This document shows, piece by piece, positions 2,341-57,751 of a stretch of DNA of 64,000 bases. Source of the DNA: Macrostomum lignano (taxonomy: Eukaryota). The notes below the pieces were generated by a model, which worked only from the letters and a program-made list of their open reading frames with translations, had not been told where the DNA came from and did no database searches. The position numbers and the translations under genes are program-made. Each line of letters begins with the position of its first letter. The first letter of the stretch is position 1. The stretch covers positions 921,403 through 985,402 of the forward strand of contig NIVC01000104.1 in NCBI GenBank assembly GCA_002269645.1. Direction: 5' to 3'.

Positions 2341-3140
2341 AGAGTGAGAATCACTCCTAACGGATCTGTGAGAATCGCCCCTAATAGCTGTGTGAGAATC
2401 GCCCCTAATAGCTGTGTGAGAATCGCCCCTAATAGCTGTGTGAGAATCGCCCCTAATAGCTGTGTGAGAATCGCTCCTAATAGCTGTGTGAGAATCGCCC
2501 CTAACGGATCTGTGAGAATCGATACTAATAGCTGTGTGAGAATCCCCCCTAATAGCTGTGTGAGAATCGTCCCTAATAGATCTGTGAGAATCGTCCCTAA
2601 TAGCTGTGTGAGAATCGCCCCTAATAGCTGTGTGAGAATCGCTCCTAATAGCTGTGTGAGAATCGCCTCTAATAGCTGTGAAAATCGCCCCTAATAGCTG
2701 TGTGAGAATCGCCCCTAATAGCTGTGTGAGAATCGCCCCTAATAGCTGTGTGAGAATCGCCCCTAATAGCTGTGTGAGAATCGCTCCTAATAGCTGTGTG
2801 AGAATCGCCTCTAATAGCTGTGAAAATCGCCCCTAATAGCTGTGTGAGAATCGCCCCTAATAGCTGTGTGAGAATCGCCCCTAATAGCTGTGTGAGAATC
2901 GCCCCTAATAGCTGTGTGAGAATCGCCCCTAATAGCTGTGTGAGAATCGCCTCTAATAGCTGTGGGAGAATCGCCCCTAATAGCTGTGAAAATCGCCCCT
3001 AATAGCTGTGAAAATCGCCCCTAATAGCTGTGTGAGAATCGCCCCTAATAGCTGTGTGAGAATCGCCCCTAATAGCTGTGTGAGAATCGCCCCTAATAGC
3101 TGTGAAAATCGCCCCTAATAGCTGTGAAAATCGCCCCTAA
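2341..3140. repeat. 24-bp minisatellite (GAGAATCGCCCCTAATAGCTGTGT), about 33 copies with 22-bp variants
   Basis: Tandem array starting about 45 bp after the zinc-finger stop codon. Confidence 0.95.
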
Positions 3141-3725
3141 TCAAATTGCAGTACGATTGTATTGACATCAACTATATTATGCTTATTTAAAGGCATTACA
3201 AATGCACATTAGCTTCCATGAGATTGAGTACAAGCACTGTTTACTTATATAATTTCTAACTTTCTTTGTTGTGCATTGAATATAATAATATATAGCTATT
3301 ATAATGTAGTTTATCCGTGAAAAAAAACTAATCATGCTTATTTACTTGTAATTTTATTGTATTTCAAGTTCAACTCATACCGGTAGACTAATTTGACTAC
3401 TGCCAAAATAGCGTACTAGATTTTATAGTTAAATTATAGTTCTATACATTTTTAGTATACTGGATATACTGGTATCGCTACTATTTAGTAAGCTAATTCT
3501 CTTAGTTTTGACCAAATCAAAAATGGCATTTCAATGCGCCGCCCCTTGCGCGCAGCGTAAATTCAATACGTTGGATTGAAGTCTGCCAATTTTTGTTGAT
3601 TTTGCATTTTTATTTTGGGTAAATTAAGTCTGATCTGTACTCTTAACTTGTACTTTTACGAGTACATAGCTGCTTGTTATCTTAATTACAGTCGGTCATA
3701 TGTTTTATTAACACAGGAGCATTAA

Positions 3726-4030: not shown

Positions 4031-4477
4031 GAAAGGGGTATTCTAATGACATGACAATAATTAATTAAAGCAATTAAAGCAATGCGCCAGCTATTCCTGT
4101 TTCATTTGCTTTTGTGCTGTTTTTGCTAATGTTAAAATAAATATTCAGATATTGGCTCTTGCGAATGCCGAATAAAATTGCCAACTTGAATTACCGCCCA
4201 ATTATTCCACAAGTAAAACACTGTGCTTCATCTACTTGGTCTTACTAGTCGTTGCCATAGATATTCTGTGTAGCTATGCGAAAATGAGTTATTCCTTGTC
4301 AATAAATATTTAACTGGTTGTTGAAATTCCAACTATTATTAATATTGTTATTTAAAAATAACAATGCTGCAATGCTCGATTCCAACCGTGCGTTGGCGAG
4401 TTTTTGTCTGTTCAAGCGCGTGCTAATAATGACTATTGTTTGGTAAGCGAAAGTAATAATATTATACAAAAGAGTTT

Positions 4478-5243
4478 TGCTGGGCCAGTCTCCCAGATCC
4501 TCAGTTACTGGGCCAGCCTCCCAGATCCTCAGTTGCTGGGCCAGCCTCCCAGAGTGCCAGTTGCTGGGCCAGCTTCCCAGATCCTCAGTTGCTGGGCCAG
4601 CTTCCCAGATCCTCAGTTGCTGGGCTAGCCTCCCAGAGTGCCAGTTGCTGGGCCAGCCTCCCAGATCCTCAGTTGCTGGGCCAGCTTCCCAGATCCTCAG
4701 TTGCTGGGCTAGCCTCCCAGAGTGCCAGTTGCTGGGCCAGCCTCCCAGATCCTCAGTAGCTGTGCCAGCCTCCCAGACCCTCAGTTGTTGGGCCAGCCTT
4801 TCAGAGTGCCAGTTGCTGGGCCAGCTTCCCAGATCCTCAGTTGCTGGGCCAGCTTCCCAGATCCTCAGTTGCTGGGCCAGCCTCCCAGATCCTCAGTAGC
4901 TGTGCCAGCCTCCCAGACCCTCAGTTGTTGGGCCAGCCTTTCAGAGTGTCAGTTGCTGGGCCAGCCTCCCAGATCCTCAGTAGCTGTGCCAGCCTCCCAG
5001 ATCCTCAGTTGCTGGGCCAGCCTCCCAGATCATCAGTTGCTGTGCCAGCCTCCCAGATCCTCAGTTGCTGGGCCAGCCTCCCAGATCCTCAGTTGCTGGG
5101 CCAGCCTCCCAGATCCTCAGTTGCTGTGCCAGCCTCCCAGATCCTCAGTTGCTGGGCCAGCCTCCCAGATCCTCAGTTGCTGGGCCAGCCTCCCAGATCC
5201 TCAGTTGCTGGGCCAGCCTCCCAGATCCTCAGTTGCTGGGCCA
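4478..5243. repeat. 28-bp minisatellite (GCTGGGCCAGCCTCCCAGATCCTCAGTT), about 27 copies
   Basis: Tandem array; same consensus as 36537-39869. Confidence 0.95.
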
Positions 5244-5956: not shown

Positions 5957-7483
5957 ATTCACAGCTCTTTTGGCGCCTTCCTTCACAGCTGATTTGGCGC
6001 CCCCTTCACAGCTCTTTTGGCGCCTCCCTTCACAGCTGATTTGGCGCCCCCTTCACAGCTCTTTTGGCGCCTCCCTTCACAGCTGATTTGGCGCCCCCTT
6101 CACAGCTGGTTTGGCGCCCCCTTCACAGCTGATTTGGCGCCTCCCTTCACAGCTGGTTTGGCGCCCCCTTCACAGCTGGTTTGGCGCCCCCTTCACAGCT
6201 GATTTGGCGCCCCCTTCACAGCTGATTTGGCGCCCCCTTCACAGCTGGTTTGGCGCTCCCTTCACAGCTGATTTGGCGCCCCCTTCACAGCTGATTTGGC
6301 GCCCCCTTCACAGCTCTTTTGACGCCTCCCTTCACAGCTCTTTTGGCGCCTCCCTTCACAGCTGATTTGGCGCCCCCCCACACAGCTGGTTTGGCGCCCC
6401 CCTCACAGCTGGTTTGGCGCCCCCTTCACAGCTGATTTGGCGCCTCCCTTCACAGCTGGTTTGGCGCCCCCTTCACAGCTGATTTGGCGCCCCCTTCACA
6501 GCTGATTTGGCGCCCCTTTCACAGCTGGTTTGGCGCTCCCTTCACAGCTGATTTGGCGCCCCCTTCACAGCTGATTTGGCGCCCCCTTCACAGCTCTTTT
6601 GACGCCTCCCTTCACAGCTCTTTTGGCGCCTCCCTTCACAGCTGATTTGGCGCCCCCTTCACAGCTCTTTTGGCGCCTCCCTTCACAGCTGATTTGGCGC
6701 CCCTTCACAGCTCTTTTGGCGCCTCCCTTCACAGCTGATTTGGCGCCCCCTTCACAGCTAATTTGGCGCCCCCTTCACAGCTGATTTGGCGCCCCTTCAC
6801 AACTGACTTGGCGCCCCCTTCACAGCTGGTTTGGCGCTCCCTTCACAGCTGATTTGGCGCCCCCTTCACAGCTGATTTGGCGCCCCCTTCACAGCTCTTT
6901 TGACGCCTCCCTTCACAGCTCTTTTGGCGCCTCCCTTCACAGCTGATTTGGCGCCCCCTTCACAGCTCTTTTGGCGCCTCCCTTCACAGCTGATTTGGCG
7001 CCCCTTCACAGCTCTTTTGGCGCCCCCTTCACAGCTAATTTGGCGCCCCCTTCACAGCTGATTTGGCGCCCCTTCACAACTGACTTGGCGCCCCCTTCAC
7101 AGCTGGTTTGGCGCCCCTCCCCTTCACAGCTGATTTGGCGCCCCCCCCACACAGCTGGTTTGGCGCCCCCTCACAGCTGGTTTGGTGCCCCCTTCACAGC
7201 TGGTTTGGCGCCCCTCCCCTTCACAGCTGATTTGGCGCCCCCCCACACAGCTGGTTTGGCGCCCCCTTCACAGCTGGTTTGGCGCCCCCTTCACAGCTGG
7301 TTTGGCGCCCCCTTCACAGCTGGTTTGGCGCCCCCTTCACAGCTGGTTTGGCGCCCCCTTCACAGCTGGTTTGGCGCCCCCTTCACAGCTGGTTTGGCGC
7401 CCCCTTCACAGCTGGTTTGGCGCCCCCTTCACAGCTGGTTTGGCGCCCCCTTCACAGCTGATTTGGCGCCCCCTTCACAGCTG
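5957..7483. repeat. 23-bp minisatellite (TTCACAGCTGATTTGGCGCCCCC), about 65 copies
   Basis: Tandem array; the repetitive ORFs over it are artefacts. Confidence 0.95.
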
Positions 7484-9177: not shown

Positions 9178-10161
9178 ATGTCTTCGTCAACGTCGTCAAG
9201 TAGCAGCGTCGGTAGCGGCGTCTCCAGCCCGGTAGGCAAGCTGCTCCTAGCTGGTACGTGCGCCTGCGTCGCCGACGCCCTGACTTTTCCCATGGACACC
9301 GTGAAGGTGCGTATGCAGATGGCACCAGCCGGCAGCGGCTTCCTCGCCACCCTGCGTCACGTGGCCGTCAGCGAGGGCCCGGCCGGCCTGTACGGCGGCT
9401 TGGGCGCCGGACTGCAACGTCAGTTCGCCTTCGCCTCGATTCGAATCGGATTCTACGAGCCGGTAAAGCAAGCCTACATGGGACAGCTGGGGATGCGGCA
9501 TCAGGACGCCTCCACCACGGCCCTGATGGGCGTCCGACTTCTGGCCGGCCTCACCACGGGCGCCTTGGCCGTCTGCTGCGCCCAGCCAACCGACGTCGTC
9601 AAGGTGCGCATGCAAGGCTCGGCCGGCCGCTACCCCGGCTGCGCCGCCGCCTATTCAACAATCTGGCGATCTGAGGGCCTCGCGGGCCTGTGGAAAGGCA
9701 CCGGGCCCAGCGTCGCTCGCAACGCCATCGTCAACTGCGCTGAGGTCGTGTCCTACGACACCATCAAGACCTACATGGTGGCCCGCCTGGGCATGCCGAA
9801 CGCTGTCGGCACGCACTTCCTGGCCGGCCTGTGCAGCGGCTTCATCGCCACCCTGGTCGCCTCCCCGGTGGACGTGGTGAAGACCCGCCTGATGAGCGCC
9901 AGGCCGGAGGAGCGCGCCGGAGTCGTCAGCGTCACGCGCGGCCTCTACCAGCAGAGCGGCCTGCGCGGCTTCTACAAAGGCTTCGGGCCGAGCTTCGCCC
10001 GCATCGCCGGCTGGAACATCCTCATGTTCGTGCTGTACGAGAAGGCCAAATCCGCGCTAGAAGTCGCCCCGGCGCTGCCGTCGCCTCATCTGGTGGCGGT
10101 GGCGGCTGTCGCGGCCTCCACGGGTGCCCCGTCTGTGCAGCCCAAGAAGCTGCAGCTTTGA
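9178..10161 (+). CDS. UCP2: Mitochondrial uncoupling protein 2/3-like (SLC25 carrier), intronless, 327 aa
   Basis: Three carrier motifs PMDTVKVRMQ, PTDVVKVRMQ and PVDVVKTRLM, plus UCP2-type segments LQRQFAFASIRIGFY, RLLAGLTTGALAV and LWKGTGPSVARNAIVNCAE. The symbol indicates family likeness, not proven orthology. Confidence 0.92.
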   Translation: MSSSTSSSSSVGSGVSSPVGKLLLAGTCACVADALTFPMDTVKVRMQMAPAGSGFLATLRHVAVSEGPAGLYGGLGAGLQRQFAFASIRIGFYEPVKQAYMGQLGMRHQDASTTALMGVRLLAGLTTGALAVCCAQPTDVVKVRMQGSAGRYPGCAAAYSTIWRSEGLAGLWKGTGPSVARNAIVNCAEVVSYDTIKTYMVARLGMPNAVGTHFLAGLCSGFIATLVASPVDVVKTRLMSARPEERAGVVSVTRGLYQQSGLRGFYKGFGPSFARIAGWNILMFVLYEKAKSALEVAPALPSPHLVAVAAVAASTGAPSVQPKKLQL

Positions 10162-12365: not shown

Positions 12366-14520
12366 TCAGCACAGCCCCGGCACCAGCTGCAGCACCACCC
12401 GGCCCTGCTGGCTGCCGCTGTTGCCGCCGGTGACGCCGCTGCAGTCGAGGCCGTCGCAGGCGGAGCCGCCGCCCCTCCGGCGTGATTCAGGCCGAGACCC
12501 GCGCCGCCTCCGCTGAAGCCGCCGCCCGCGCCAGCGGCGCCTCGACGGCCACCGCCGCTGCCGCCGGCGCCGCCGCCTCCTCCAAAGCCGCCGACGCCGG
12601 TGTTGCCGGAGCCGGCAAGGCCGCCAGTCCAGCCTTCGGCGGGACCGCCGCCGCCGTCTCCATCATCAGTGCTCAGTCTCTGATTTATTGGCCCGCCCAG
12701 CCAGCCGGCGCCGCAGCCTCCGTGGTGGCTGTTTCTTGGGTCCTGCTGGGGTCGTTGAAGCCCGGGCCTCCGTTGGTGCCACCAAAGCCGGCGTTATCAC
12801 TATAAGAAGTTGAGTCGCTTCCGTTGGAGCCTGACTGACCGGAAATGCCTGGTCGATGAAAACATTGGCAAGGAAAACCCGTAGAAGCGTCTCGAACTAA
12901 TTATAAATGCCCGGCGGGAAATTCGAGGGCCGTGTGAGCTTTCTGTGTGAGCGTGTGTAGGAGCTTATATGTAATATGTGTTTGGGAATAAGGGAATGCA
13001 CAGATGGTGGGACGATGTCGCCGAAGGCGTTGCACCAGGGTGTCCAAAGCCCACCTGCAAGCTGCAGATGTTACTTTTATTGGTTGGTCACTTTCTCATT
13101 CTGCTTCTGACACTCGATCCCTGCAGCAGGAATATCTTAAAACTTTATTTCAGTATGTTTAATTATACTTAAGTGGAGTAAGAGCGTTCATGTCACTGGC
13201 ACAGCAAATTTTCATAGATCTATCTTACATTTCATAAACAGTTTTAGTATTTTTCCTGAGTTCATTCAGTGCGTCTGGCTGTAGTGTAGAGTAGAGGTCA
13301 ATAAGTGCCGGCAAGCGATAATTCAAAGCCGTTTTCTTTGGGTTGTGTCTCGACTAAAGAGCACCTGGAGCTGCTCATGCATTCCACATTGGGAGGCCAG
13401 TTCAAAGCAATTTCACTTGCCATTTCGTCTAAGGGACGCCCCGCCGCCGCCTCCCGCGGCGACCAGAAGGCGACCGTCGGCGCCGCCGACGAACACGAAG
13501 CTGCCGCCGCCACCGCCTCCGCCGCAGTCGCCGTTGACGGCCGGTCCGCCGGCCTGACCGACCAAAACCGACAGCCGGACGCCGGCAGTCAGGTTGAAGC
13601 GGCCCGACATCGAGGCTCCGCTACCGCCAGCTGTGCCTGCGAAGCTGTTGGAGCCGCCTGCAGCGCCCGGGCCTCGATTTGGTAGCAGCCGGTCAGCTCG
13701 ACTGTCAGCTGCTGGATGGAGCCGTCGCGGCCCGAGCTCGAGTCTGGGAGTCAGTGAGGGTCAGCGGGGTCAGCTGAGTTGCTGTGAGAATGAGCTGGCA
13801 TGAGAATGAGCTGGCATGAGAGTGAGCTGGTGTGAGAATGAGCTGGCATGAGAATGAGCTGGCATGAGAATGAGCTGGCATGAGAGTGAGCAGGCGTGAG
13901 AATGAGCTGGTATGAGAATGAGCTGGCATGAGAATGAGCTGGCATGAGAATGGGCTGGCATGAGAATGAGATGGCATGAAAATGAGCTGGCATGAGAATG
14001 AGCTGGCATGAGAATGAGCTGGCATGAGAATGAGCTGGCATAAGAATTAGCTGGCATGAGAATGAGCTGGTATGAGAGTGAGTTGGCATCAGAATGCGCT
14101 GGCATAAGAATTAGCTGGCATGGGAATGAGCTGGCATGAGAATGAGCTGGCATGAGAATGAGATGGCATGAGAGTGAGCTGGCGTGAGAATGAGCTGGCA
14201 TCAGAATGAGCTGGCATGAGAATGAGAACTTGAAACTGCGCCGGCGGCACGCACTTGAGAACTTGAGAACGAGTTCTCACGCACTTGAGAACTCGTGCGT
14301 GATGTTGAGCCTCCTCGACTCGATGACGCTGTCGATGTCGACCGCCTTCCACACCTCGGCGCCGGCCTCGGATCCCAGCGACCTCCACGCGTGACTGCGC
14401 GGCGGTCCGGCAGTCCGCGAGGCGTCCTCGACGAAGAGCAGCTGGCAGACGCGGCTGGCCTGCAGCAGGCTGACTGCCGCACAGCGCCTCGACCAGCAGC
14501 TGAGCAGGCAGTCTTGGATG
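12366..14520 (-). pseudogene. Damaged paralogue (copy A) of the PAN-like + ALK/LTK glycine-rich-domain gene
   Basis: Exons of about 14520-14285, 13743-13421 and 12850-12366 are homologous to copy B. There are 1-bp deletions at about 13666, 12730 and 12473. About 95 bp of exon 2 is missing, and no signal-peptide exon was found upstream. Confidence 0.7.
13785..14226. repeat. 15-bp intronic minisatellite (TGAGAATGAGCTGGCA-type), copy A intron
   Basis: Tandem array; orthologous to 18158-18487. Confidence 0.95.
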
Positions 14521-17216: not shown

Positions 17217-19157
17217 TCAGCACAGCCCCGGCACCAGCTGCACCACCACCCGGCCCTGCTGGCTGCCGCTGTTGCCGCCAGTGACGCCGCTGCAGTCGAA
17301 GCCGTCGCAGAAGGAGCCGCCGCCCCCTCCTGCGTGGTTCTGGCCGGTACCTGCGCCACCTCCGCTAAAGCCGCCGCCCGCGCCGCCCGCGCCAATCAGG
17401 CCCTCACCGCTGCCGCCGGCGCCGCCGCCTCCGCCGAAGCCGCCCAAGCCGGTGTTTCCCAGGCCAGCGAGGCCGCCGACCCAGCCTTCGGCAGAGCTGC
17501 CGCCGCCGTCTCCGTCATTGGCGCTGCGCCGAGCGTTGACCGGCTTGCCCAGCCAGCCGGCGCCGCAGCCACCGTGATTAACCAACCGGAAGGTTTTCTG
17601 CGGCCTGTTGGAGCCGGGATTTCCGTTGGCACCGCCGATGCCCACAGCCACGGCGGCGGCTGTGGAGTCCGTGCCATTGGGGCCCTGCTGCCCGGCGACT
17701 CCTGAAGAGCGACATTTGCCAGTTCCTCATTTACAAGCCAACTGCAGTGCGCCTACCTGTGGCATCGATCAGCATTGAGGAACCGTTCGCACCTGACTGG
17801 CTGTAGGACGCCCCGCCGCCGCCTCCCGCGGCGACCAGAAGGTGACCGCCGGCGCCGCCGACGAACACGAAGCTGCCGCCGCCGCCGCCTCCGCCGCAGT
17901 CGACGTTGACGGCCGGTCCGCCGGCCTGACCGACCAAAATCGACAGCCGGACGCCGGCAGTCAGGTTGAAGCGGCCTGACATCGAGGCTCCGCTGCCGCC
18001 AGCTGTGCCTGCGAAGCTGTTGGAGCCGCCTGCAGCGCCCCGGGCCTCGATTCGGTAGCAGCCGGTCAGCTCGACTGTCAGCTGCTGGATGGAGCCGTTG
18101 CGGCCCGAGCTCGAGTCTGGGAGTCAGTGGGGGTCAGTGGGGTCAACTGAGTTGCTGTGAGAATGAGCTGGTATGAGAATGAGCTGGCGTGAGAATGAGC
18201 TGGCATGAGAATGAGATGGCATGGGAGTGAGCTGGCATGAGAATGAGCTGGCATGAGAATGAGCTGGCATGGGAGTGAGCTGGCATGAGAGTAAGCTGGT
18301 ATGAGAATGAGCTGGCATGAGAATGAGCTGGCATGAGAATGAGCTGGCATGAGAATGAGCTGGCATGAGAATGAGCTGGCATGAGAATGAGCTGGCATGA
18401 GAATGATCTGGCATGAGAATGAGCTGGCTTGAGAATGAGATGGCATGAGAATGAGATGGCATGAGAATGAGATGGCATGAGAATGAGAAATTGGGACTGG
18501 TCTCACTTGAGAACTCTTTCGTGATGTTGAGCCTTCTCGAGTCGATGACGCTGTCGATGTCGACCGCCTTCCACACCTCGGCGCCGGCCTCGGATCCCAG
18601 CGACCTCCACGCGTGTCTGCCCGGCGGTCCGGCAGTCCGCGAGGCGTCCTCGACGAAGAGCAGCTGGCAGACGCGGCTGGCCCGCAGCAGGCTGACTGCC
18701 GCACAGCGCCTCGACCAGCAGCTGAGCAGGCAGTCTTGGATGGAGGCTGAGCTGGGCTCGCTGATGATGAGGCTGCTGACGGTCGGGTCGAGCAGGACTG
18801 GGCCGGAGGAGTTGATGAAGCGGCTGCAGCTGGCGAGCGCCTGTGTGAGGGAGGCTGGGACTGGCGGGGCGGGTTTGGGATGAGCGGCTGCGTGAGGGAG
18901 GCTGGGACCGGCGGGGCGGGTTTAGGATGAGCGGCTGCGTGAGGGAGGCTGGGACTGGTGGGGCGGGTTTGGGATGAGCGCCTGCGTGAGGGAGGCTGGG
19001 ACTGGCGGGGCGGGTATGGGATGAGCGGCTGCGTGAGGGAGGCTGGGACTGGCGGGGCGGGTTTAGGATGAGCGGATGCAGGTGGCGACTTAGCAACAGA
19101 GCTTTTCAGCTTACCTATCGTCAGCAGGCAGAAACAGGCAAGAGTTATTGGTGCCAT
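17217..19157 (-). CDS. Secreted protein: signal peptide + PAN/apple-like domain + ALK/LTK-type glycine-rich domain, 401 aa (copy B); exons 19157-19115, 18860-18507, 18116-17793, 17701-17217
   Basis: All three introns are GT-AG phase 1 and the total is 1206 nt, in frame. N-terminus MAPITLACFCLLTIVPASLTQA; PAN-like DCLLSCWSRRCAAVSLLRASRVCQL; glycine-rich-domain motifs QQLTVELTGCYRIEARGAAGG, LSILVGQAG, GGGGGSFVF, LLVAAGGGG and GGFGGGGG...GGGFSGGG. No transmembrane or kinase domain. Confidence 0.85.
18158..18487. repeat. 15-bp intronic minisatellite, copy B intron 2
   Basis: Same unit as 13785-14226. Confidence 0.95.
18841..19076. repeat. 47-bp GC-rich tandem repeat (5 copies) overlapping the intron 1 acceptor of copy B
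   Basis: Unit CTGCGTGAGGGAGGCTGGGACTGGCGGGGCGGGTTTGGGATGAGCGG; about 2.5 copies also at 14521-14640. Confidence 0.9.
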
Positions 19158-20271: not shown

Positions 20272-23200
20272 TGAAGCGGCTTGCGAGCGGTAGCTAGTTG
20301 AAAAGTAGCAAGCAAGCAAAAACAGTTTTCCGAGTACATCTGTTAGGGGCATATGAGCGTAGTTCTTTGTATTCTTTATACGTAGTTCTTGGTCGCAAAA
20401 CCGGCGTCGGGACTGGGTCTTCCGCGTCGATGACGACTGGCTTCAGCCTCTCGACTGACACCTGGTCGCTGCGAGTGCCCAGGTCCAGCAGGAAAGCTTC
20501 ATGGCGTCCCGCTCGAGGACCTTGAACCGGCCGTCGTAAGGTCGCTGCAGTGGAGGGCGGTGGCCGTCGCGCCGGATTAAGACGAACTGGCAGGCGTCGA
20601 GGGCAGCGGGCCAGGCTGTGGGGCGGCTGCCGTGACGGGACGTCAGCGTCGGCTGGAATGCCTGGACGGCACCGCGGAGCCGGGCGGGGAACTGGTCGTG
20701 GTCGCCGGGCGGCGGGCTGGGCTGCAGGCACTCGCCGGGCACGCAGAGGGGCGCACCGTAGACCAGCTCGGCCGACGAGGCCGGCAGGTCCTCCTTAGGG
20801 GCTGCCCGGATGCCGAGCAGCACCCAGGGCAGCTCGCTGACCCAGGCTGGTCCGGTCAGCCGCGCCATGAGGCACGGCTGCCGGTGGAAACGCTCGACCA
20901 GCCCATTCGCCTGCGGATGGAAAGCCATGGTCCGGTGCAGCTGCATGCCGAACAACCGGGAGACGTTGGACCACAGCTGCGACGTGAACTGCGAGCCGCG
21001 GTCCGAGGTGATATCGCTCGGCACGCCGAGCGTGGCGATCCAATGGGCGATGAAGGCGGAGGCGCATGCGGCCGCGGAGGTGTCGGTCATCGGTATCGCC
21101 TCGGGCCACCTGGTGAAACGGTCCTTGATGGTCAGCAGATGCGTGAACCTTGCGAAGGCAGCAGCGGCCCCACCAGGTTGACGTGCACCTGGGCGAAGCG
21201 CTGGTCCGGGACGCGGATATTGTCAACCGGGGCGGAGACGTGCCGCTGCACCGTGGCCGTCTGACAAGCGACGCAGGACCGGGCCCACTGGCTGACGTCC
21301 TTGTTCATGCCGGCCCCCCCCCCCACGAACTTGGCGGCCACGAGGCGCCGCGTGCTGCGGATGGACGGGTGGGCGAGGCCGTATGTGGCGTCGAAGACGT
21401 TGCGGCGGAAATCCGGTGGCACTAACGGGCGCGACCGGCCCGTGGAGATGTCGCAGAGCAGGTCGACACCGGGGCTGAACTGCAGCGGGCTCTAGTTGTA
21501 TGCTGGCGTCGGCCTGACTGGCCGTATCGGCCGCCTGCGCCTGCGCCATTGCCGCAAAATCCACTGCAGCAAAGAAACCGTGCAGCGAAACAGCGCGTCT
21601 GCGACCGAGTTGTCCTTGCCCGCCACGCGCTGGATGTCCGTGGTGAACTTGGACACGTAGGCCAGGTGGCGCTGCTGCCGGGCGGACGTCGGACATCTTG
21701 GACATGGCGGTGACCAGTGGCTTGTAGTCCGTGAAAGCAGCGAATGTGCGGCCCTCGAGGAAATAGCGAACCGCCGCCAGGTACAAGGCGAGCAGCTCGT
21801 GGTCGAACGCGCTGTACTTCTGCTCGGGCCGGAGGAGCTGCCGGCTGAAGAAGGCAAACGGCTGTCAGGCGCCGCCAACCCGCTGCTCGAGCGCCGCACG
21901 GACTGCGGTATCGGAGGCATCGTATGGCCGCGGGTGCGCCAGCATGGCGGCAGAGGCCAGCGCCCGCTTCGCTCCGTCGAAAGTGGCGGTCAGCTCAGGC
22001 GTCCACCGGACGAACTTCTTGCCGGCCATGGCCGCATGGATGGGGCGCAGCAGCTGGGCGGCGCGCGGAACGAAGCGGTGGTAGAAATTCACCATGCCGG
22101 CGAACTCCTGCAGGCCCTTTAGCGTGCCGCTGGCGACTTTAGCGGGCAGCGGCACGGCCCCTTGGGCGCTGATCCGGTGGCCGAGGAAGTCGATCTCGCT
22201 GCGGCCGAACCCGCACTTTGCCGGATTGACGATAAGGCCGTTGTCGGCCAGGCGCTGGAACAGCGTCCACAGGTGCTCCAGGTGCTGCTGCGGGCTGCGG
22301 CTGGCGACCAGGAAGTCGTCGATGTAGTCGAAAACGAAGTCCAGGTCTTGGCAGACGGAGTACACCAGCCGCTGGAAGGCCTGGGCGGCGTTCTTGAGGC
22401 CGAACAGCATTCGCAGGAACTCGAGAAGAGGCCAAACGGGGTGGTGACTGCGGTCTTGGCACGTCAACTGTGGCCACGGGCACCTGGTGGTAGCCGCGGA
22501 CCAGGTCGATCTTGGAGAAGATCGAGCAGCCGGCCAGGCGCGCTGAGAAGTCCTGGATGTGCGGCACCGGGTAGTGGTCGGGCACCATGGCATCGTTGAG
22601 CCGCCTGAAGTCGCCGCAGGGCCGCCAGAGGCCTTTGGCACCATATGCAACGGCGAGGACCACGGGCTGTTGGACCGGCGCACGATGCCGAGCTGCTCCA
22701 GGAGCCGGAACTCCTCCTTGGCCACCGCCAGCTTGTCCGGCGGGCCCTGCGTCGGGATTTGGTGCTCCAACACGTGTCGTGGCGCAGCCCGCTGGAAACT
22801 GGGCTCGGTGAGGGCGGGGAACTCGGCCAGCAGCTGGTTGTATGGGTCCGCAGCGGCGGCTGCGGCGAGCTGCAGTCCGGGCCCCGCGCCGTCCAGCAGG
22901 TGCACGCTGGCGAGCGAGCGGGCGTCCAGGTGGCGTCGGTGCGACAGGTCCACCAGCAGGCGGTGGTGCCGCAGGAAGTCGGTCAGCCGGCCGGCTGTCC
23001 CAGAGCTTGTCCGCCTGCTGCGCTGCTGCCCGGGGGTCCGCGAAACTGACGGTTGTCATGGCCATGCGTACCTCCGGTGGCAGCTGTTGGCGGAACAGTT
23101 CCTCGAACAGCAGGCAGGGGCGGTGGTTCCCCAGCAGGGCGAGCATCTCGTCTATCAACTCGGACGGCCGCCGGTCGCCAAGGCCGGACATGCTGAGCAG

Positions 23201-23620
23201 GCGGCTGGCCCGCTGCTGAGGAGTCAAATCGAACGTGCTATTGAGGCGCTCCTTTAGCTGAGCTTCTTTACTTGTTCGCCTCTGGAGGAGCCTCGAGCAC
23301 ATCGAGGAGGCGCTCTGCTGTCTGCTGGTCAAGAGCTGCGACCAGATGGGCGTACTTGGTCTTGTCCTGAGTGATGCCTCTCTGGGTAAACTGAGCCTCG
23401 GCTTGGATAAAGCAGGCTCGAGGCTGGGCCGCCCAAAACGTGGGCAACTACGGGGACACAGCAGAGTCGATTTGTGGGGCCATTGCACGAAATGGCTGCG
23501 TCGGACTCACCAATGAAGCGGCTTGCGAGTGGTAGCTAGTTGAAAAGTAGCAAGCGAGCAAAAACAGTTTTCCGAGTATATTTGTTAGGGGCATACGAGC
23601 GTAGTTCTTTATACGCGACA
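20272..23620 (-). mobile_element. Decayed Ty3/Gypsy LTR retrotransposon
   Basis: Short LTR-like direct repeats at 20272-about 20385 and 23514-23620, and a PBS-like TGGTGAGTCCGAC. Gag LPTFWAAQP...AEAQFTQRGIT, RT YIDD, RNase H DASD...ELLALY, integrase H..H..C..C, SDRGSQF and HPQANGLVERFHR. Many frameshifts; protease active site and PPT are missing; no TSD found. Confidence 0.9.
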
Positions 23621-24379
23621 AAGAATAGGGAGGTGCGAGTCAACTATCGAGAGGGTTTTTGTTAAATTAGGCTCATTATAATTGGTCTGTGCTGTTAAAA
23701 GATCCGCTTGCAGAATGTAGATTGGAAATGGACGGTAAGAATTCGTTAACTGTTAGAAATGGAAATGTTTGGTCAGAGATAACAGGGAAATTATGTGAAT
23801 ACGAGTCTGCTGACCATTGGATAGCCGTGCTAGTGTCTAATGCCTAAGGTGTTTGACCTAGCCGATGGGCTGGAGGGCCGGGGAGTAGTCTGGTCGCTAG
23901 CGGCCCCCCTCCTGATGTCGGGCCAGCCTTTAGGGTTATTTTGGCCTACTGCCCGCCCGGTCAGGTGGAGCGGCAAAGAGGGTACTGCGCCCCTTCGAGG
24001 GTAGCCCACCAACATTTATCATGGCCTTCGAACCGACTATGGATAAAAAAGCTTTACCTAGGGACGGGGACCTTTCTAAACCCCAACCTCAGTCCGAAGG
24101 ATCGGCCGGCTGTGCTGGCATATCCAACGGGAGCCATCGAAACCAAGGTGCGGGGGCCAAAGCGGCGGCGCCCATCAAGGGTGTTGAAGCAACCGGCTCC
24201 TCAAAGCAAACAGACGGGACGACCGGTGGAGGCTCCAGCAGTTCAGCGGCGGTGCTCTCTGGAGATGCTGCTGCGACTGCTGAGGCTGAAACCACGGCGC
24301 GGCAAATGACCACGACCAACAAAGAGATTCCTTCTCGAGCTACCTTTGCCGCAAAGGCCAGAATCTAGAAGACCAGGAC

Positions 24380-24852
<473 letters not shown>

Positions 24853-25584
24853 TCAGGGTAAGACTGCGATGTGCCGATTAGACCAGCTGTATTGTGGTAG
24901 TGTGGTACAATTCCTCGAGATTTCGCTCTCTCCAGCCAGTCTCAAAATTCTGCCACCCTCCCCAGATCTGACAAATATGAAACTCTGATATTGATGAAGG
25001 TCAAAAATAATCAGTTAAGTCGAGAAATGGATGACGTGGAAACAAATTCAGAACTATCAAGAAGTTTGTTTGCAGCTCCATCAGCGAATTTCAAGCCGCA
25101 TCGGACAGTGCTGATCCCGACCAAGTGGCCGAAGGAACCGTGAACAGAGCTAAATTTACACACACATTGACCTGTTTTAGGAGTTGCATGCGTTTATCTT
25201 TGGTGTGCAGGACCTGGGGCATCCCGGGAGAGGTCAGTGCCAATGCCAAATCAGACCCAAGTTTGTCTCCAATGAGTCAGTCCCAGGGCCTTCTGAAAGG
25301 CGTTCGGCATCGACCACCAATAGACTGCACTCTGTACTTCTCAAGGCAATTGTCAAGCAGTAAAACAGTATCTGAACTGTTGCACTGAACTGTCATTTAA
25401 ACTGCCAAGAATGCCTGTTTAGCCATCTCTGTCCATTCCAGTGAGCGCAATCGCTAGTGTTTGGGAGTGGAGTTCAAAAATATCCCTGAGCCGGAATAAA
25501 ATTCCTTTTTGACTGCTCATTTGACATCATTTATGCCACACCCCGTTAGTCACAATTACCTGAGAGACTGTCATTAAGCTAGCG

Positions 25585-26400
25585 AAGTGTCAATCAAAGT
25601 CATAAAAAGGTCATAAGAGTCAAATAGACTATTCAGCTGCATACACTTGCACTGACAAAACTCTGCTAAACACACTTTTGATTGCTGAGCTGTCATGAAG
25701 CAAACAATGCTGCCTAATCTTCACAGACAAGCAAGCCATGCAGTCTCTGCTCCGCCCTGCTCACATGAAGGCTTTCAGCTCAACCAACGTCGCCGCTCCG
25801 ACCGGAAACACGTGCCAATCCGATGTGCATAAATTCGCATCTGCCGACTGCTCAAGATAACAAGCTCAGACTCGACTCAGCTCAAACACTCGAATCGATC
25901 CTACTCAAGCAATCATGAAGTGGCAACTCGCTCTCGGACTTTTGCTGTGCGCAGCCCTGGCTGTCGCTGTGCCCACCCAGGAGGAGAAGGCTGAGGCCAT
26001 GGCCGTTCTGGAGGCTCTGTCCAACGTGGACGAGTCCAGCATGTCGGAGGAGGCCGTCGACCACGCCAAGAAGTTCGTCAGGGTCAGGGTTAGGCTTGGT
26101 TAAATGCTACCATAGCCACACCTGACATCCAGCTCACTTTACCGAAGCTTGAGACTCGCTGGCACTGACGACAACTCACAAATGACCTTTGAACTTTGAA
26201 TCCCGACCGCAAAATCACGGTTGTATTGACTGATCCGTTTTACAAAATATACCATCGAGAACACAGATTAAGATCTCAGCAGCACCTTAAGCTTTGTCTT
26301 ATTGAACATTTTCAATTTCGCCCAGTCGCCAGTCCAGTCTTTGCGTAGTGAACTGGTACTTGAAATTATTTGAAGATAATCATTGATTGTAACTTAATAG
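25585..26400 (+). repeat. Local duplication, copy 1 (partner 28891-about 29690, offset 3306 bp)
   Basis: Near-identical for about 527 bp (3 substitutions seen, none in the CDS), then visibly diverged but still alignable for about 290 bp. Confidence 0.9.
25915..26103 (+). CDS. 62-aa secreted prepropeptide: signal peptide, acidic propeptide, KK, FVRVRVRL-G(stop); copy 1
   Basis: MKWQLALGLLLCAALAVA hydrophobic signal, GC3-biased codons, a TATA-like CATAAAT about 85 bp upstream, a dibasic site and a C-terminal Gly. Present in two identical copies. Confidence 0.7.
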   Translation: MKWQLALGLLLCAALAVAVPTQEEKAEAMAVLEALSNVDESSMSEEAVDHAKKFVRVRVRLG

Positions 26401-26745
26401 TTACTACTGGAAGGTTTTGATTTGCTAAATCTCCTTATTAACGGCTACAAAGCATTGGGGAAAAAGTGTAAGGCAGGAAAAATGCGTCGCGGGCAAGTCT
26501 CGTGCTCCCGAGCGCAAAATGGTGGCATTGCGCAAGGCAGTGGTCGACACCGTCAAGCAGTATTGCGCTAAGACACAGGAAGCTCTGACTAACTCCCTGG
26601 AGAACCTACGAGTAGTTGACGCATTTCACGCTGAGGTATGGTGCCATACCTGCAAGAACAGGCACGATTCTACGGTTCGTCGACAGCCCGGGCTCTGAGC
26701 TTCATTATCTGTATTTTGTGCGGCCGAGAGATTCCCAGAGAGATT

Positions 26746-27787
26746 ACTGCTGGAGTGTTTCTGCCGATGTAGTCGACTGCGCAGCATGTAACATGTCCCT
26801 CGGCCCATTTACTGCAGGAGTGTTTCTGCCGATGTAGTCGACTGCGCAGCATGTAACATGCCCCTCGGCCCATTTACTGCAGGAGGGTTTCTGCCGATGT
26901 AGTCGACTGCGCAGCATGTAACATGTCCCTCGGCCCATTTACTGCCGGAGTGTTTCTGCCGATGTAGTCGACTGCGCAGCATGTAACATGTCCCTCGGCC
27001 CATTTACTGCCGGAGTGTTTCTGCCGATGTAGTCGACTGCGCAGCATGTAACATGCCCCTCGGCCCATTTACTGCCGGAGTGTTTCTGCCGATGTAGTCG
27101 ACTGCGCAGCATGTAACATGTCCCTCGGCCCATTTACTGCCGGAGGGTTTCTGCGGATGTAGTCGACTGCGCAGCATGTAACATGTCCCTCGGCCCATTT
27201 ACTGCAGGAGTGTTTCTGCCGATGTAGTCGACTGCGCAGCATGTAACATGCCCATCGGCCCATTTACTGCCGGAGTGTTTCTGCCGATGTAGTCGACTAC
27301 GCAGCATGTAACATGCCCATCGGCCCATTTACTGCCGGAGTGTTTCTGCCGATGTAGTCGACTGCGCAGCATGTAACATGTCCCTCGGCCCATTTACTGC
27401 CGGAGGGTTTCTGCCGATGTAGTCGACTACGCAGCATGTAACATGCCCATCGGCCCATTTACTGCCGGAGTGTTTCTGCGGATGTAGTCGACTGCGCAGC
27501 ATGTAACATGTCCCTCGGCCCATTTACTGCCGGAGTGTTTCTGCCGATGTAGTCGACTGCGCAGCATGTAACATGCCCATCGGCCCATTTACTGCCGGAG
27601 TGTTTCTGCCGATGTAGTCGACTACGCAGCATGTAACATGCCCCTCGGCCCATTTACTGCCGGAGGGTTTCTGCCGATGTAGTCGACTACGCAGCATGCA
27701 ACATGTCCCTCGGCCCATTTACTGCCGGAGGGTTTCTGCCGATGTAGTCGACTGCGCAGCATGTAACATGTCCCTCGGCCCATTTAC
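26746..27787. repeat. 65-bp tandem repeat, about 16 copies
   Basis: Unit TTTACTGCCGGAGTGTTTCTGCCGATGTAGTCGACTGCGCAGCATGTAACATGTCCCTCGGCCCA; no unique spacers. Confidence 0.97.
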
Positions 27788-27849
27788 TTTAGGCGTCAAC
27801 GAGTAAAGGTAGGTGCTTGTCCCTTGAAAGGTCCAGCGTAGTAGTCTGG

Positions 27850-28560
27850 GTGCACTAGGCACCACTTCCCGTGCTCTTGGCCGTCCCTGCCACAGTTCCA
27901 TTGATTTCACTTCCCATGAGACTGGAATGCTTTGTGATCCTTGTGTCGCGCATCCAGCTTGCATTGTGGGGCTGTCTTATTGATTAACAAAGCGTCACTT
28001 CCTTTTATTTCTCCTTCGCCGCACGGGACAGCTTCACATGCACTGACCAGACTTCACCTTCTCCCAAGTGATGTCCTTCAATTTTTCCTTCAGGAGCTTT
28101 CTGACAATCTACTTGATGGCCAAGCCAAATACAAACTGGTGGCGGAGCCTATCGTTCAGGCCTGTCAATTCGAAGCTCTCGACCGCCTGATGAAGCCTTC
28201 TGGAGTAAGCAGCAGGTGTGTCTTCGCTATCCTCTTGCTTCAGATAGTGAAAGACGTACCGATAGACCAGTCCTGACCTTTATCGCCTTTGATTCTTTAG
28301 AAGTTCGTTCATCTCGTCGAAAGTTTTGTCTTGTGGTTTGTGAGGGAGTAAGGCCAGCAGGTTAAAAGCTTTTTTACCGAGCTGATCGATGAATGCGTGT
28401 CTTCAGGACGTCCTCCTCATACTTATTAACTTCAGCAATTGTCTCCAATGGTTGAAGGCATCGGCTCACTTCAGCCGAGACGTCTATCTCCAGGGTTTGA
28501 TCGCAATCGTCGGCGGTGTTGTTTTCCGTTGGAACGGAAGGCGACAAGCAGCTTCATTGG
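27850..28560 (-). mobile_element. Degenerate Gypsy-type gag remnant
   Basis: Minus-strand fragments KPQDKTFDEMNELLK and RYVFHYLKQEDSED...LRHQFVFGL..*IVRKLLKE, plus a decayed knuckle WNCGRDG; in-frame stops. Confidence 0.6.
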
Positions 28561-29220
28561 CGATGTAGCAAGCAGCTACAAATTAAATCCTCCTGTTGAG
28601 CAGCTCATCACTGTTACGCTTGTTCTATTTTGAGCCCTGTGGCTCACACGTTTTTGGCAATCGAAGACTAACTAGGTCGGGAGAATAACTTAAACAGCTT
28701 TCCTGTAAGCACACAATCTATATATTCGTATGAGGCGGCTAACAGGGATTATATTGGCTAGATCTGATATCGAAGTCGCTTAATCAAAGACTGAGGCTGA
28801 CTGAACTTGACAGCTCGCAGCTGACCGAACTGTGGCTTTTCGTGCAATTCTCGCCAATGGCCCAAAACGATGAGAACTTCAGAGTCGATAAAGTGTCAAT
28901 CAAAGTCATAAAAAGGTCATAAGAGTCAAATAGACTATTCAGCTGCATACACTTGCACTGACAAAACTCTGCTAAACACACTTTTTATTGCTGAGCTGTC
29001 ATGAAGCAAACAATGCTGTCTAATCTTCACAGACAAGCAAGCCATGCAGTCTCTGCTCCGCCCTGCTCACATGAAGGCTTTCAACTCAACCAACGTCGCC
29101 GCTCCGACCGGAAACACGTGCCAATCCGATGTGCATAAATTCGCATCTGCCGACTGCTCAAGATAACAAGCTCAGACTCGACTCAGCTCAAACACTCGAA
29201 TCGATCCTACTCAAGCAATC

Positions 29221-29409
29221 ATGAAGTGGCAACTCGCTCTCGGACTTTTGCTGTGCGCAGCCCTGGCTGTCGCTGTGCCCACCCAGGAGGAGAAGGCTGA
29301 GGCCATGGCCGTTCTGGAGGCTCTGTCCAACGTGGACGAGTCCAGCATGTCGGAGGAGGCCGTCGACCACGCCAAGAAGTTCGTCAGGGTCAGGGTTAGG
29401 CTTGGTTAA
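29221..29409 (+). CDS. 62-aa secreted prepropeptide, copy 2 (identical protein)
   Basis: CDS reads identical to 25915-26103. Confidence 0.7.
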   Translation: MKWQLALGLLLCAALAVAVPTQEEKAEAMAVLEALSNVDESSMSEEAVDHAKKFVRVRVRLG

Positions 29410-29768
29410 ATGCTACCGCAGCCACACCTGACATCCAGCTCACTTGATCGGAGCTTGAGACTTGCTGGCACTGACGTATGCACTCTGAACTCTGACTCCT
29501 GACGGCATAATTATTGACTGATCAGTTTAACAAAATATGACAACATGAACTCTGTTTCTCAGCAGAACTATAAGCTTTGTCTGATTTATCAGTTTCACCA
29601 AGTCGCCAGCAGTAAAGTAAGCGTAAGTACCTAGGGCTTATCTGAGCAGATATTCATTGATTATAACTTATTTAAGCCTAAATTCTGATGCTGACTCGAT
29701 AACATATATAGACGCTAGAGAGCCTCGAAGTTCTAAGGAAAACATCGACGGCTGAATTTTTGAAGTAT

Positions 29769-35995: not shown

Positions 35996-57751
<21,756 letters not shown>

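Follow-up and report, generated by a model that had tools for sequence, protein, structure and literature searches.

Within a 64,000-nucleotide stretch of the genome of the free-living marine flatworm Macrostomum lignano (contig NIVC01000104.1 of assembly GCA_002269645.1, positions 921,403 to 985,402 of the forward strand; referred to below as the window, and numbered from its first letter), two identical short open reading frames (ORFs) end in codons for the strictly alternating octapeptide FVRVRVRL, followed by a glycine and a stop. The question that this locus raises is whether such ORFs are genes, what product they would release, and what that product might do. The original prediction, made from the sequence alone, was of a pair of prepropeptide genes that yield an amidated, beta-amphipathic FVRVRVRL-NH2. 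We find that the two ORFs belong to a large family of M. lignano genes built on one plan, which is almost certainly a real and expressed family of prepropeptide genes. The reading that we favour, and to which we give about an even chance, is that these genes encode lineage-restricted, secreted, cationic and membrane-active effector peptides of the host-defence type.

The gene pair and the layout of its precursor

The two ORFs (25915-26103 and 29221-29409, both on the forward strand) comprise 62 codons and a stop each and encode MKWQLALGLLLCAALAVAVPTQEEKAEAMAVLEALSNVDESSMSEEAVDHAKKFVRVRVRLG. Their coding sequences (CDSs) show 0 differences in 189 nt, so that the identity claimed for the pair holds at the nucleotide level, and no third copy of the family was found in the 64-kb window. 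The order of parts originally read from the translation, namely a signal peptide, an acidic spacer, KK, FVRVRVRL and Gly-stop, is exact, and the octapeptide is written with the codons TTC GTC AGG GTC AGG GTT AGG CTT. The signal peptide begins with MK as its n-region, continues with a hydrophobic core of 14 residues and closes with A-V-A, which puts small residues at -3 and -1; among the paralogues V17, A18 and P20 never vary, A16 hardly does, and position 19 (+1) is variable. By sequence rules and by conservation alike, this would be a cleavable N-terminal signal peptide. The parts of the two genes are as follows.

25803..25834, forward strand: core promoter of copy 1, with GGAAAC at 25803-25809, an E-box CACGTG at 25809-25814, CCAAT at 25815-25819 and a TATA-like CATAAAT at 25828-25834; invariant in 11 aligned paralogues
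25861..25914, forward strand: 5' untranslated region (UTR) of copy 1, back-calculated from transcript-derived 5'-open models; an in-frame TAA lies at 25858-25860
25915..25968, forward strand: predicted signal peptide of copy 1, residues 1-18, MKWQLALGLLLCAALAVA, with predicted cleavage after A16-V17-A18
25969..26067, forward strand: acidic propiece of copy 1, residues 19-51 (33 aa), net charge -8, conserved core QEEKA..A...LE.LSN.DE...S.E
26068..26073, forward strand: dibasic site KK (AAG AAG), K52-K53, of copy 1; invariant in the subfamily
26074..26100, forward strand: predicted mature FVRVRVRL (26074-26097) and amide-donor Gly (26098-26100) of copy 1; design kept across paralogues
26101..26103, forward strand: stop TAA of copy 1
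26104..26314, forward strand: probable 3' UTR of copy 1, holding the family-conserved block TTTTACAAAATAT at 26238-26250, a candidate non-canonical poly(A) signal region
29109..29140, forward strand: core promoter of copy 2, of the same sequence as that of copy 1, with the E-box at 29115-29120, CCAAT at 29121-29125 and TATA at 29134-29140
29221..29409, forward strand: CDS of copy 2, with the predicted signal peptide at 29221-29274, propiece at 29275-29373, KK at 29374-29379, FVRVRVRL at 29380-29403, Gly at 29404-29406 and stop at 29407-29409
29410..29600, forward strand: probable 3' UTR of copy 2, which holds the conserved block TTTAACAAAATAT (29526-29538)
25585..26170, forward strand: gene-conversion tract, copy 1 side (partner 28891-29476), extending from the promoter through the 5' UTR and CDS and 67 nt into the 3' UTR

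A multigene family in M. lignano

Homology searches, cluster look-ups and a profile search returned at least 60 GenBank-annotated M. lignano models on the same plan, all of them named just 'hypothetical protein', and the window together with loci L001-L008 holds 27 intact intronless copies with 17 distinct CDSs. Set against these 27 intact copies and at least 60 models sharing one plan, chance is far outweighed as the source of the ORFs at the window locus. Every short-peptide copy has KK or KKK, two hydrophobic residues, two to four (Arg/His-hydrophobic) units, Gly and a stop. Besides the FVRVRVRL of the window, the short mature variants include FVRVRARIRL, FIRARVRVRL, WLRVRARVRI, FVRVHVRF, FVRLRVRI, IFRVRARIHI, IFRVRVRI, IFRVHVRF, IFRVRVHI and FIHIHF, and one variant carries an extended tail, WLRVRARVRVGSRRRSRS-G. 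The look for paralogues of differing mature sequence that the original prediction had suggested thus finds them in abundance, and all keep the signal, the acidic propiece, KK and Gly-stop.

Several features of these copies point to constraint on the encoded peptide. Arg is preserved despite replacement of AGG by CGT, CGC or AGA (two or three substitutions each), and the length of the mature region varies only in whole two-codon units. When the 30-nt peptide-coding segment of the window gene was mutated at random to 9-11 differences, the full design survived in 0.03-0.14% of trials, a figure that illustrates constraint and is not to be taken as a p-value because the paralogues are not independent. 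Divergence, expressed as Nei-Gojobori proportions across the 17 distinct CDSs, is distributed over the gene as follows.

Signal peptide: pS 0.09, pN 0.04, the lowest divergence in the gene
Propiece: pS 0.20, pN 0.19
Mature peptide: pS 0.41, pN 0.33, the highest divergence in the gene

The cluster loci that were fetched hold 5-7 copies each, with seven in the 32-kb L008 and six in the partly overlapping 20-kb L003 (both on NIVC01000181.1); these are tandem multigene clusters with birth-and-death or concerted evolution.

The profile search further revealed a wider superfamily in which the same signal peptide and acidic propiece precede unrelated tails. The long tails are WRIRFRRIRIRWRRVYRVVRTAYRIYRHLPFP-GK, WLLRRIRIRWRRVLRVASRVYRIYRYLPI-GK, FRIRIRWGRVARNVLRLL-GK and WRRRRRFRWRKAIRVAGKVAKAVL; other members end in a 2-Cys peptide, in a Pro/Arg-rich repeat (FLRVRLPRVRMPRVRLPRVRLPRLRVRFRWSKK), or in the His-striped GFHVHFH-G and FHLHLP-GK. 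The tails accordingly fall into an Arg- or His-striped class of 6-10 residues, an Arg/Trp-rich class of 18-33 residues, and single Pro/Arg-rich and 2-Cys types, so that one prepro scaffold carries at least 20 distinct mature peptides, with C-termini that include RL, RI, RV, RF, HI, HF, FH and LP. Among 22 distinct precursors, 21 have KK, KKK or RKK as the processing site and 19 end in Gly or Gly-Lys, with Gly-stop in every short-peptide copy. The superfamily also has a non-cationic outlier tail, AVYKPNYYKD. The outlier genes (L010 5001-5198, encoding P0044, and the gene for P0062) have the usual signal and propiece and a Tyr-rich AVYKPNYYKD or AVYKPNYNKD tail with no Gly, and they adjoin a proteasome subunit gene, outside any cluster. 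A cluster of long-peptide paralogues at L012 6001-33330 comprises three intact copies and a frameshifted pseudogene (22217-22354, reverse strand). The Pro/Arg-rich repeat peptide is encoded, with a homologous promoter, on a 929-nt Logan contig of SRR31628392 (L009), whose sequence is not among the M. lignano GenBank proteins returned and whose origin may be either a different Macrostomum species or a locus that lacks annotation.

The family appears to be restricted to Macrostomum. When 1.84 billion representative proteins were searched exhaustively with HMMER, no homologue outside the family appeared, and a word-indexed profile search matched only within it, all matches being from M. lignano apart from one clearly related read-archive contig; P0045 was rejected as a relative because its match is a spurious one to a repeat. 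Pfam returned no credible domain in the window ORF: the model 'Lock_Gag1-like' aligns with a 17-residue propiece stretch at 16.6 bits against a cut-off of 27, reaches the cut-off (27.1 bits) only in the artificially duplicated two-copy chimera P0001, and was treated as spurious. A PDB search gave no match, Rfam found nothing in the window, and a literature search for the peptide or the gene identifiers returned no matches. The logic of the precursor is familiar, the family is new, and the design of its mature peptide is unusual.

Promoter, transcripts and gene models

Both window copies are preceded by the block GGAAAC-CACGTG-CCAAT-N8-CATAAAT, which is the one invariant in the aligned paralogues. 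Distant superfamily members in L009, L011 and L012 have the promoter core GGAAA-N-ACGTG...GCATAAAT in common with it; CCAAT and the full CACGTG are confined to the window subfamily, and outside the core the promoters of the distant members differ. The third promoter-like match, at 46135, falls within the gag ORF of a retrotransposon, has neither a TATA box nor a family ORF nearby, and is ascribed to chance.

The GenBank annotation of the assembly (Mlig_3_7) was derived from StringTie/TACO genome-guided and de novo transcripts with TransDecoder ORFs, and is not ab initio (PMC5730564). Its 5'-open models P0002, P0016, P0019 and P0020 (79, 77, 76 and 72 aa) correspond to starts at about 25864, 25870, 25873 and 25885, so that the inferred 5' ends lie just past the in-frame TAA and 27-51 nt downstream of the TATA box, which fits the expected position of a TATA-driven transcription start. 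The transcript-derived models are single-exon through Gly-stop, apart from a few chimeras that bridge neighbouring copies; these include P0001 (85 aa) and P0033 (139 aa), the 139-aa model spanning 27 kb in L012 between two copies. Downstream of the genes a family-conserved block, TTT(T/A)ACAAAATAT, begins 135 and 117 nt past the two stops; that of copy 1 aligns in position and context with AATAAATAT of the L012 gene, and the block is the best candidate for a poly(A) signal region.

These models bear on the reading in which the ORF opens a larger gene as its first exon, FVRVRVRLG and its stop being an intron read-through from a donor at AGG/GTCAGG or AGG/GTTAGG (the slash marking the splice site), or in which it is a non-coding repeat. 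The Val-Arg codons do resemble splice donors, and two older UniProt models, which presumably stem from an earlier ab initio annotation, use them; both prove to be chimeras when dissected. The sequence of A0A1I8G6Q8 ('SERPIN domain-containing', 73 aa) results exactly when a mini-intron of 62 nt, running from AGG/GTTAGG to an AG just past the true stop, is excised, after which the model reads into the 3' UTR. A0A1I8ID49 ('Neur_chan_LBD domain-containing', 1,047 aa) exits the ORF after KKKIFR, takes in the antisense translation of a further family copy and continues into an unrelated receptor; the transcript-based annotation has at this locus a 79-aa gene that stands by itself, and none for a receptor within 10 kb. 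Across paralogues, moreover, synonymous multi-base changes leave frame, alternation, Gly and stop intact, the transcript-derived models run unspliced through the stop, and the cDNA probe of a paralogue, described below, is colinear with the genome. Neither splicing of the transcript-derived models at the donor look-alikes nor a genuine match to a known larger protein, outcomes that were to have told against the original prediction, was found, and the read-through reading is effectively refuted already; we regard it as scarcely conceivable. The AGG/GT donor-like coding sequence has instead led older models into spurious 'serpin' and 'ligand-gated channel' fusions that are still in UniProt. The two chimeras, with their misleading names, relate to L008 10180-10243 and to protein P0061; they leave the family ORF at AGG/GT donor look-alikes.

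Expression

One long-peptide member of the superfamily, Mlig001477.g4, is represented by transcript RNA815_1838.3 (501 nt) and by a 364-nt in situ probe whose pattern is given as 'gonads' in PMC7336406 Additional file 16, which credits Ramm et al. 2019. Its primers match L012 at 5977 and 6320-6340 with no mismatch and enclose 364 nt of genomic DNA with the whole CDS inside; since the cDNA probe has the same length as the genomic segment, this represents an unspliced cDNA for a superfamily member. The gene has an AATAAA about 215 nt past its stop, which is consistent with the 501-nt transcript. The 'gonads' pattern is not transferable to the window subfamily, because the probe has no more than 74% identity to the window gene across 141 nt and the two promoters have only the core motif in common. 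None of 17 other family identifiers is in the complete in situ hybridization table of PMC7336406, and family identifiers are absent from the supplementary tables of PMC5730564, PMC5946080, PMC12732829, PMC12896417 and PMC5977470.

Concerted evolution of the tandem pair

The duplicated segment (25585-26170 and 28891-29476) is 98.5% identical between the two copies, with 9 mismatches in 586 nt, and is followed by a diverged tail (26224-26314 and 29512-29597) at 77% identity. A sister locus, L002 (contig NIVC01002033.1), is collinear with positions 23000-29768 of the window at about 94% and also has two copies around the same 65-bp minisatellite, and the comparison of the two loci separates the history of the flanks from that of the genes. 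In the distal 3' flank the window copies match their positional counterparts in L002 at 96.9% and 96.4%, as against 72.6% between the tandem copies; the flank therefore follows position and not tandem partner, and the duplication is old. In the promoter and 5' UTR the tandem copies are 99.1% alike, compared with 96.1-96.7% to their L002 counterparts, and in the CDS they are 100% alike, compared with 98.4-98.9%. Gene conversion over approximately 590 bp, acting together with selection, accounts for the two ORFs being identical, and the locus provides a clean example of concerted evolution limited to promoter and CDS in an old tandem duplicate. The minisatellite between the genes (26744-27788) has 16 copies with 96% matches in the window and only about five in L002, so that the length of the array differs between the loci.

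Properties of the predicted mature peptide

The hydrophobic moment of FVRVRVRL is 1.30 at 170 degrees (with the peak of the scan at 180) compared with 0.49 at 100 degrees, which bears out its description as beta-amphipathic. FVRVRVRL-NH2 would have a net charge of +4 and a calculated monoisotopic mass of about 1042.69 Da, with [M+2H]2+ at about 522.35. In the extended state Val/Val/Val/Leu would lie on one face and Phe/Arg/Arg/Arg on the other, and this predicted two-faced geometry is that of membrane-active, beta-sheet-forming cationic peptides.

The original prediction also held that the codons of the peptide mimic the telomeric repeat. The resemblance is there, in that 16 of 18 bases match (GTTAGG)3, but the segment contains no exact TTAGGG, having just TCAGGG twice and TTAGGC once. 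An origin from telomere repeats was rejected, given that the ORF lacks an exact repeat and that paralogues encode the same residues with CGT, CGC and CAT codons. About 80% of the Arg codons for the mature peptides (window 26074-26097 and the paralogues in L001-L008) are AGG, compared with 1/17, 3/20 and 1/8 in neighbouring host ORFs of the window, which favour CGC. This preference, together with the 6-nt steps in length, hints that hexamer-repeat slippage may have had a part in the origin or evolution of the stripe.

Proposed maturation and function

In the scheme that we propose, the signal peptide (residues 1-18) would route the 62-residue precursor of an intronless, TATA-driven gene into the secretory pathway, where the acidic propiece (net -8) would neutralize the cationic tail and keep it harmless in transport. 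An enzyme of the prohormone-convertase type would then cleave after Lys52-Lys53, PHM and PAL would convert the C-terminal Gly into an amide to give FVRVRVRL-NH2, and the secreted peptide may guard body surfaces, the gut, or gametes and eggs. A PC2 homologue is reported in M. lignano, where it is pan-neuronal (PMC12435804), and PHM and PAL are documented in other flatworms (PMC9042389). The release of a short amidated peptide roughly in this manner is probable; that its function is of the defence-type, membrane-active kind is a more tentative proposal, to which we give slightly less than an even chance.

The favoured reading, of lineage-restricted effector peptides of the host-defence type, draws mainly on the pattern of variation. 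A conserved prepro region, a hypervariable cationic tail and clustered expansion within one lineage are read as a signature of host-defence or toxin-type genes and not of neuropeptide genes, and families of the host-defence kind likewise join a signal and an anionic propiece that are conserved to a cationic mature domain that is hypervariable. Charge compensation between propiece and mature peptide, another mark of such families, is also present, the negativity of the propiece scaling with the positivity of the peptide (Spearman rho -0.77, n=22 distinct precursors, uncorrected for shared ancestry).

Several observations weigh against this reading. Eight residues is at the lower limit for natural membrane-active peptides. 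Convertases favour KK less than they do KR or RR, and cleavage could leave KK on the peptide. The His-striped FIHIHF, GFHVHFH and FHLHLP would be nearly uncharged at seawater pH, unlike a simple cationic antimicrobial peptide, and thus point to pH-dependent, metal-dependent or self-assembly behaviour. The pN/pS ratio of the mature region is 0.80, and, as this is below 1, positive selection is not demonstrated; nor is the charge correlation freed from the effect of common descent. Neither stop is followed by an AATAAA or ATTAAA in the next 330 nt. The sole in situ pattern in the superfamily is 'gonads', and not a barrier or immune tissue. The AlphaFold2 model of the precursor is all-helix and of low confidence (predicted local distance difference test, pLDDT, 63; predicted template modelling score, pTM, 0.28), although it is uninformative on the peptide, whose fold would depend on membranes or partners.

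Comparison with known systems places the family near several others and within none. Frog skin precursors of the preprodermaseptin type (dermaseptins and temporins) likewise have a conserved signal and acidic propiece, a dibasic site and a hypervariable cationic peptide that is often Gly-amidated, in a fast-diversifying multigene family, and temporins can be very short, temporin-SHf having 8 residues. There is no sequence homology between the two, however, and the phylum differs, as does the site (KK in M. lignano, KR in frogs); the frog peptides are amphipathic helices of demonstrated activity, whereas the short M. lignano peptides are strictly alternating and of beta type, and the family is known here from its genes. 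The arminins and periculins of Hydra are lineage-restricted, and cleavage separates their N-terminal part, which is anionic, from a strongly cationic C-terminal one, as is predicted for the M. lignano family. Long superfamily members (for example WRIRFRRIRIRWRRVY...) resemble the Arg/Trp-rich arminin C-terminus, and periculin is maternally expressed in the germline, which echoes the 'gonads' pattern of the one M. lignano paralogue. No homology to either was found, and the striped peptides of 6-10 residues are without a counterpart among the arminins, whose active peptide has about 31 residues. In the absence of homology to any described antimicrobial peptide family, we regard the M. lignano family as analogous to such families and a member of none.

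The closest likenesses of the short peptides themselves are to designed ones. The hairpin strands of MAX1, MARG1 and PEP8R, with VK or VR repeats, and short (X-R/K)n-NH2 peptides such as the antimicrobial IRIKIRIK-NH2, share with them the strict alternation of hydrophobic and basic residues, the C-terminal amide (predicted for the M. lignano peptides), a strand of about 8 residues and a beta-amphipathic moment, and designed (Val-Arg)n peptides are known as antibacterial beta-sheet formers. The M. lignano peptides differ in being gene-encoded, in beginning with two hydrophobic residues and in using Arg or His instead of Lys. The predicted FIHIHF-NH2, GFHVHFH-NH2 and FHLHLP-NH2 have in turn the hydrophobic-His stripe, the length and the C-terminal amide of the catalytic amyloids Ac-IHIHIQI-NH2 and Ac-LHLHLRL-NH2, although the designed peptides are N-acetylated, the window peptide is without His, and the natural forms are predicted from genes. 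To our knowledge, (Val-Arg)n and (Ile/Leu-His)n stripes occur otherwise only in designed peptides, and the M. lignano peptides are among the shortest gene-encoded cationic peptides that we know of. Their match to antibacterial, hydrogel and catalytic-amyloid designs arrived at independently by chemists would offer a natural test of minimal designs in vivo, and the charge-matched propiece a natural test of how a cell handles such peptides safely.

The gonad pattern raises the alternative that these are reproductive peptides, made in the gonads or germline and acting on gametes, on eggshell or yolk granules, or on the mate, with sexual selection or conflict driving their diversification. The gene with this pattern came from a screen for socially sensitive genes (Ramm et al. 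2019, through the table in PMC7336406 Additional file 16), its probe maps exactly onto a family gene, that gene has the promoter core in common with the window genes, and fast diversification with tandem expansion is typical of reproductive proteins, a theme of PMC7336406. The same probe is, however, too diverged from the window genes to speak for them, the promoters differ beyond the core, CCAAT and the full CACGTG being found in the window subfamily only, and the 17 other identifiers brought no second case; we consider a reproductive function unlikely, though its probability is not negligible. Antimicrobial protection of gametes or eggs would be a hybrid of the reproductive and defence readings, and a reproductive role stays in play through the gonad signal of the paralogue. 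Less probable again is that the peptides are self-assembling or metal-binding materials that, once released, assemble into beta-sheet fibrils or gels (perhaps with polyanions in the case of the Arg forms, and with Zn2+, Cu2+ or a shift in pH in that of the His forms) and serve as structural, adhesive, mucus-organizing or granule-packing elements or as a catalytic scaffold. The perfect alternation and the maximal beta hydrophobic moment at 180 degrees agree with this, as do the similarity of the Arg members to strands of the MAX1 and PEP8R hydrogelators, the close likeness of FIHIHF, GFHVHFH and FHLHLP to the designed Zn-dependent catalytic-amyloid heptapeptides IHIHIQI and LHLHLRL, and the place of the His forms among the most numerous in the annotation. 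A charge of +4 on 8 residues nevertheless disfavours self-assembly without a counter-ion, the long superfamily members do not alternate and look like ordinary cationic peptides (in two of them the hydrophobic moment peaks at about 100-105 degrees), and nothing links these genes to adhesive or rhabdite glands. The same low probability attaches to the specific proposal that the striped peptides act by triggered self-assembly into cationic or metal-binding beta-sheet fibrils and not as classical soluble ligands or pore-formers, with the acidic propiece as an inhibitor of assembly until secretion, for instance on the body surface or in the surroundings of gametes or eggs; were it true, nature would have in them an equivalent of the MAX1/IK8 antimicrobial gels and IHIHIQI-type Zn catalytic amyloids known from design.

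A signal peptide, a dibasic site and a C-terminal Gly also make up the canonical layout of a neuropeptide precursor, in which the amidated peptide would be a receptor ligand or hormone. Flatworm FMRFamide-like peptides (YIRFamide, GYIRFamide) have this same layout and Gly-amidation, FVRVHVRF-NH2 and IFRVHVRF-NH2 would be RFamides ending in -VRFamide, and PC2, as noted, is pan-neuronal in M. lignano (PMC12435804). The mature peptide is nevertheless the least conserved part of the precursor, the opposite of neuropeptide genes; at least 12 short variants with differing C-termini share the prepro region with unrelated long cationic tails; each precursor holds one peptide, in dozens of clustered copies; and the HMMER search found no homologue or orthologue in any other flatworm or animal. 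We therefore hold a neuropeptide or hormone function to be very improbable. With respect to the favoured reading of host-defence-type effectors, flatworms are reported to be without the traditional lophotrochozoan groups of antimicrobial peptides and to have an essentially uncharacterized repertoire (PMC10414684; its main text makes no mention of Macrostomum). The family would supply a genetically tractable flatworm with a large lineage-specific set of candidate effector peptides: transgenesis is established in M. lignano (PMC5730564), and RNA interference protocols are published for it.

Other features of the window

The window has a patchy G+C composition and dozens of mini- and microsatellites, with minisatellite-dense sites at 36537-39870, 4477-5243, 5958-7483, 2344-3141, 13785-14226 and 18158-18487. 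A 28-bp minisatellite unit is present in 118 copies at one site and 27 at another 31 kb away, and a 16-bp unit recurs at two sites. A seemingly intact long terminal repeat retroelement of the Ty3/gypsy type lies at 45774-49939 (forward strand), with a gag that includes a CCHC knuckle followed by protease, reverse transcriptase, RNase H and integrase in one 1,121-codon ORF, and a degraded reverse transcriptase/integrase remnant lies at 20443-23488 (reverse strand). Other coding features, all on the forward strand, are a 327-codon intronless mitochondrial-carrier ORF at 9178-10161 (Pfam Mito_carr, E 3e-64), a C2H2 zinc-finger ORF at 1757-2296 and a thrombospondin type-1 exon at 61251-61997. An interstitial degenerate telomere-like array of CCTAAA/CCAAAC units occupies 44137-44310, and CCCTAA occurs 36 times in the whole window.

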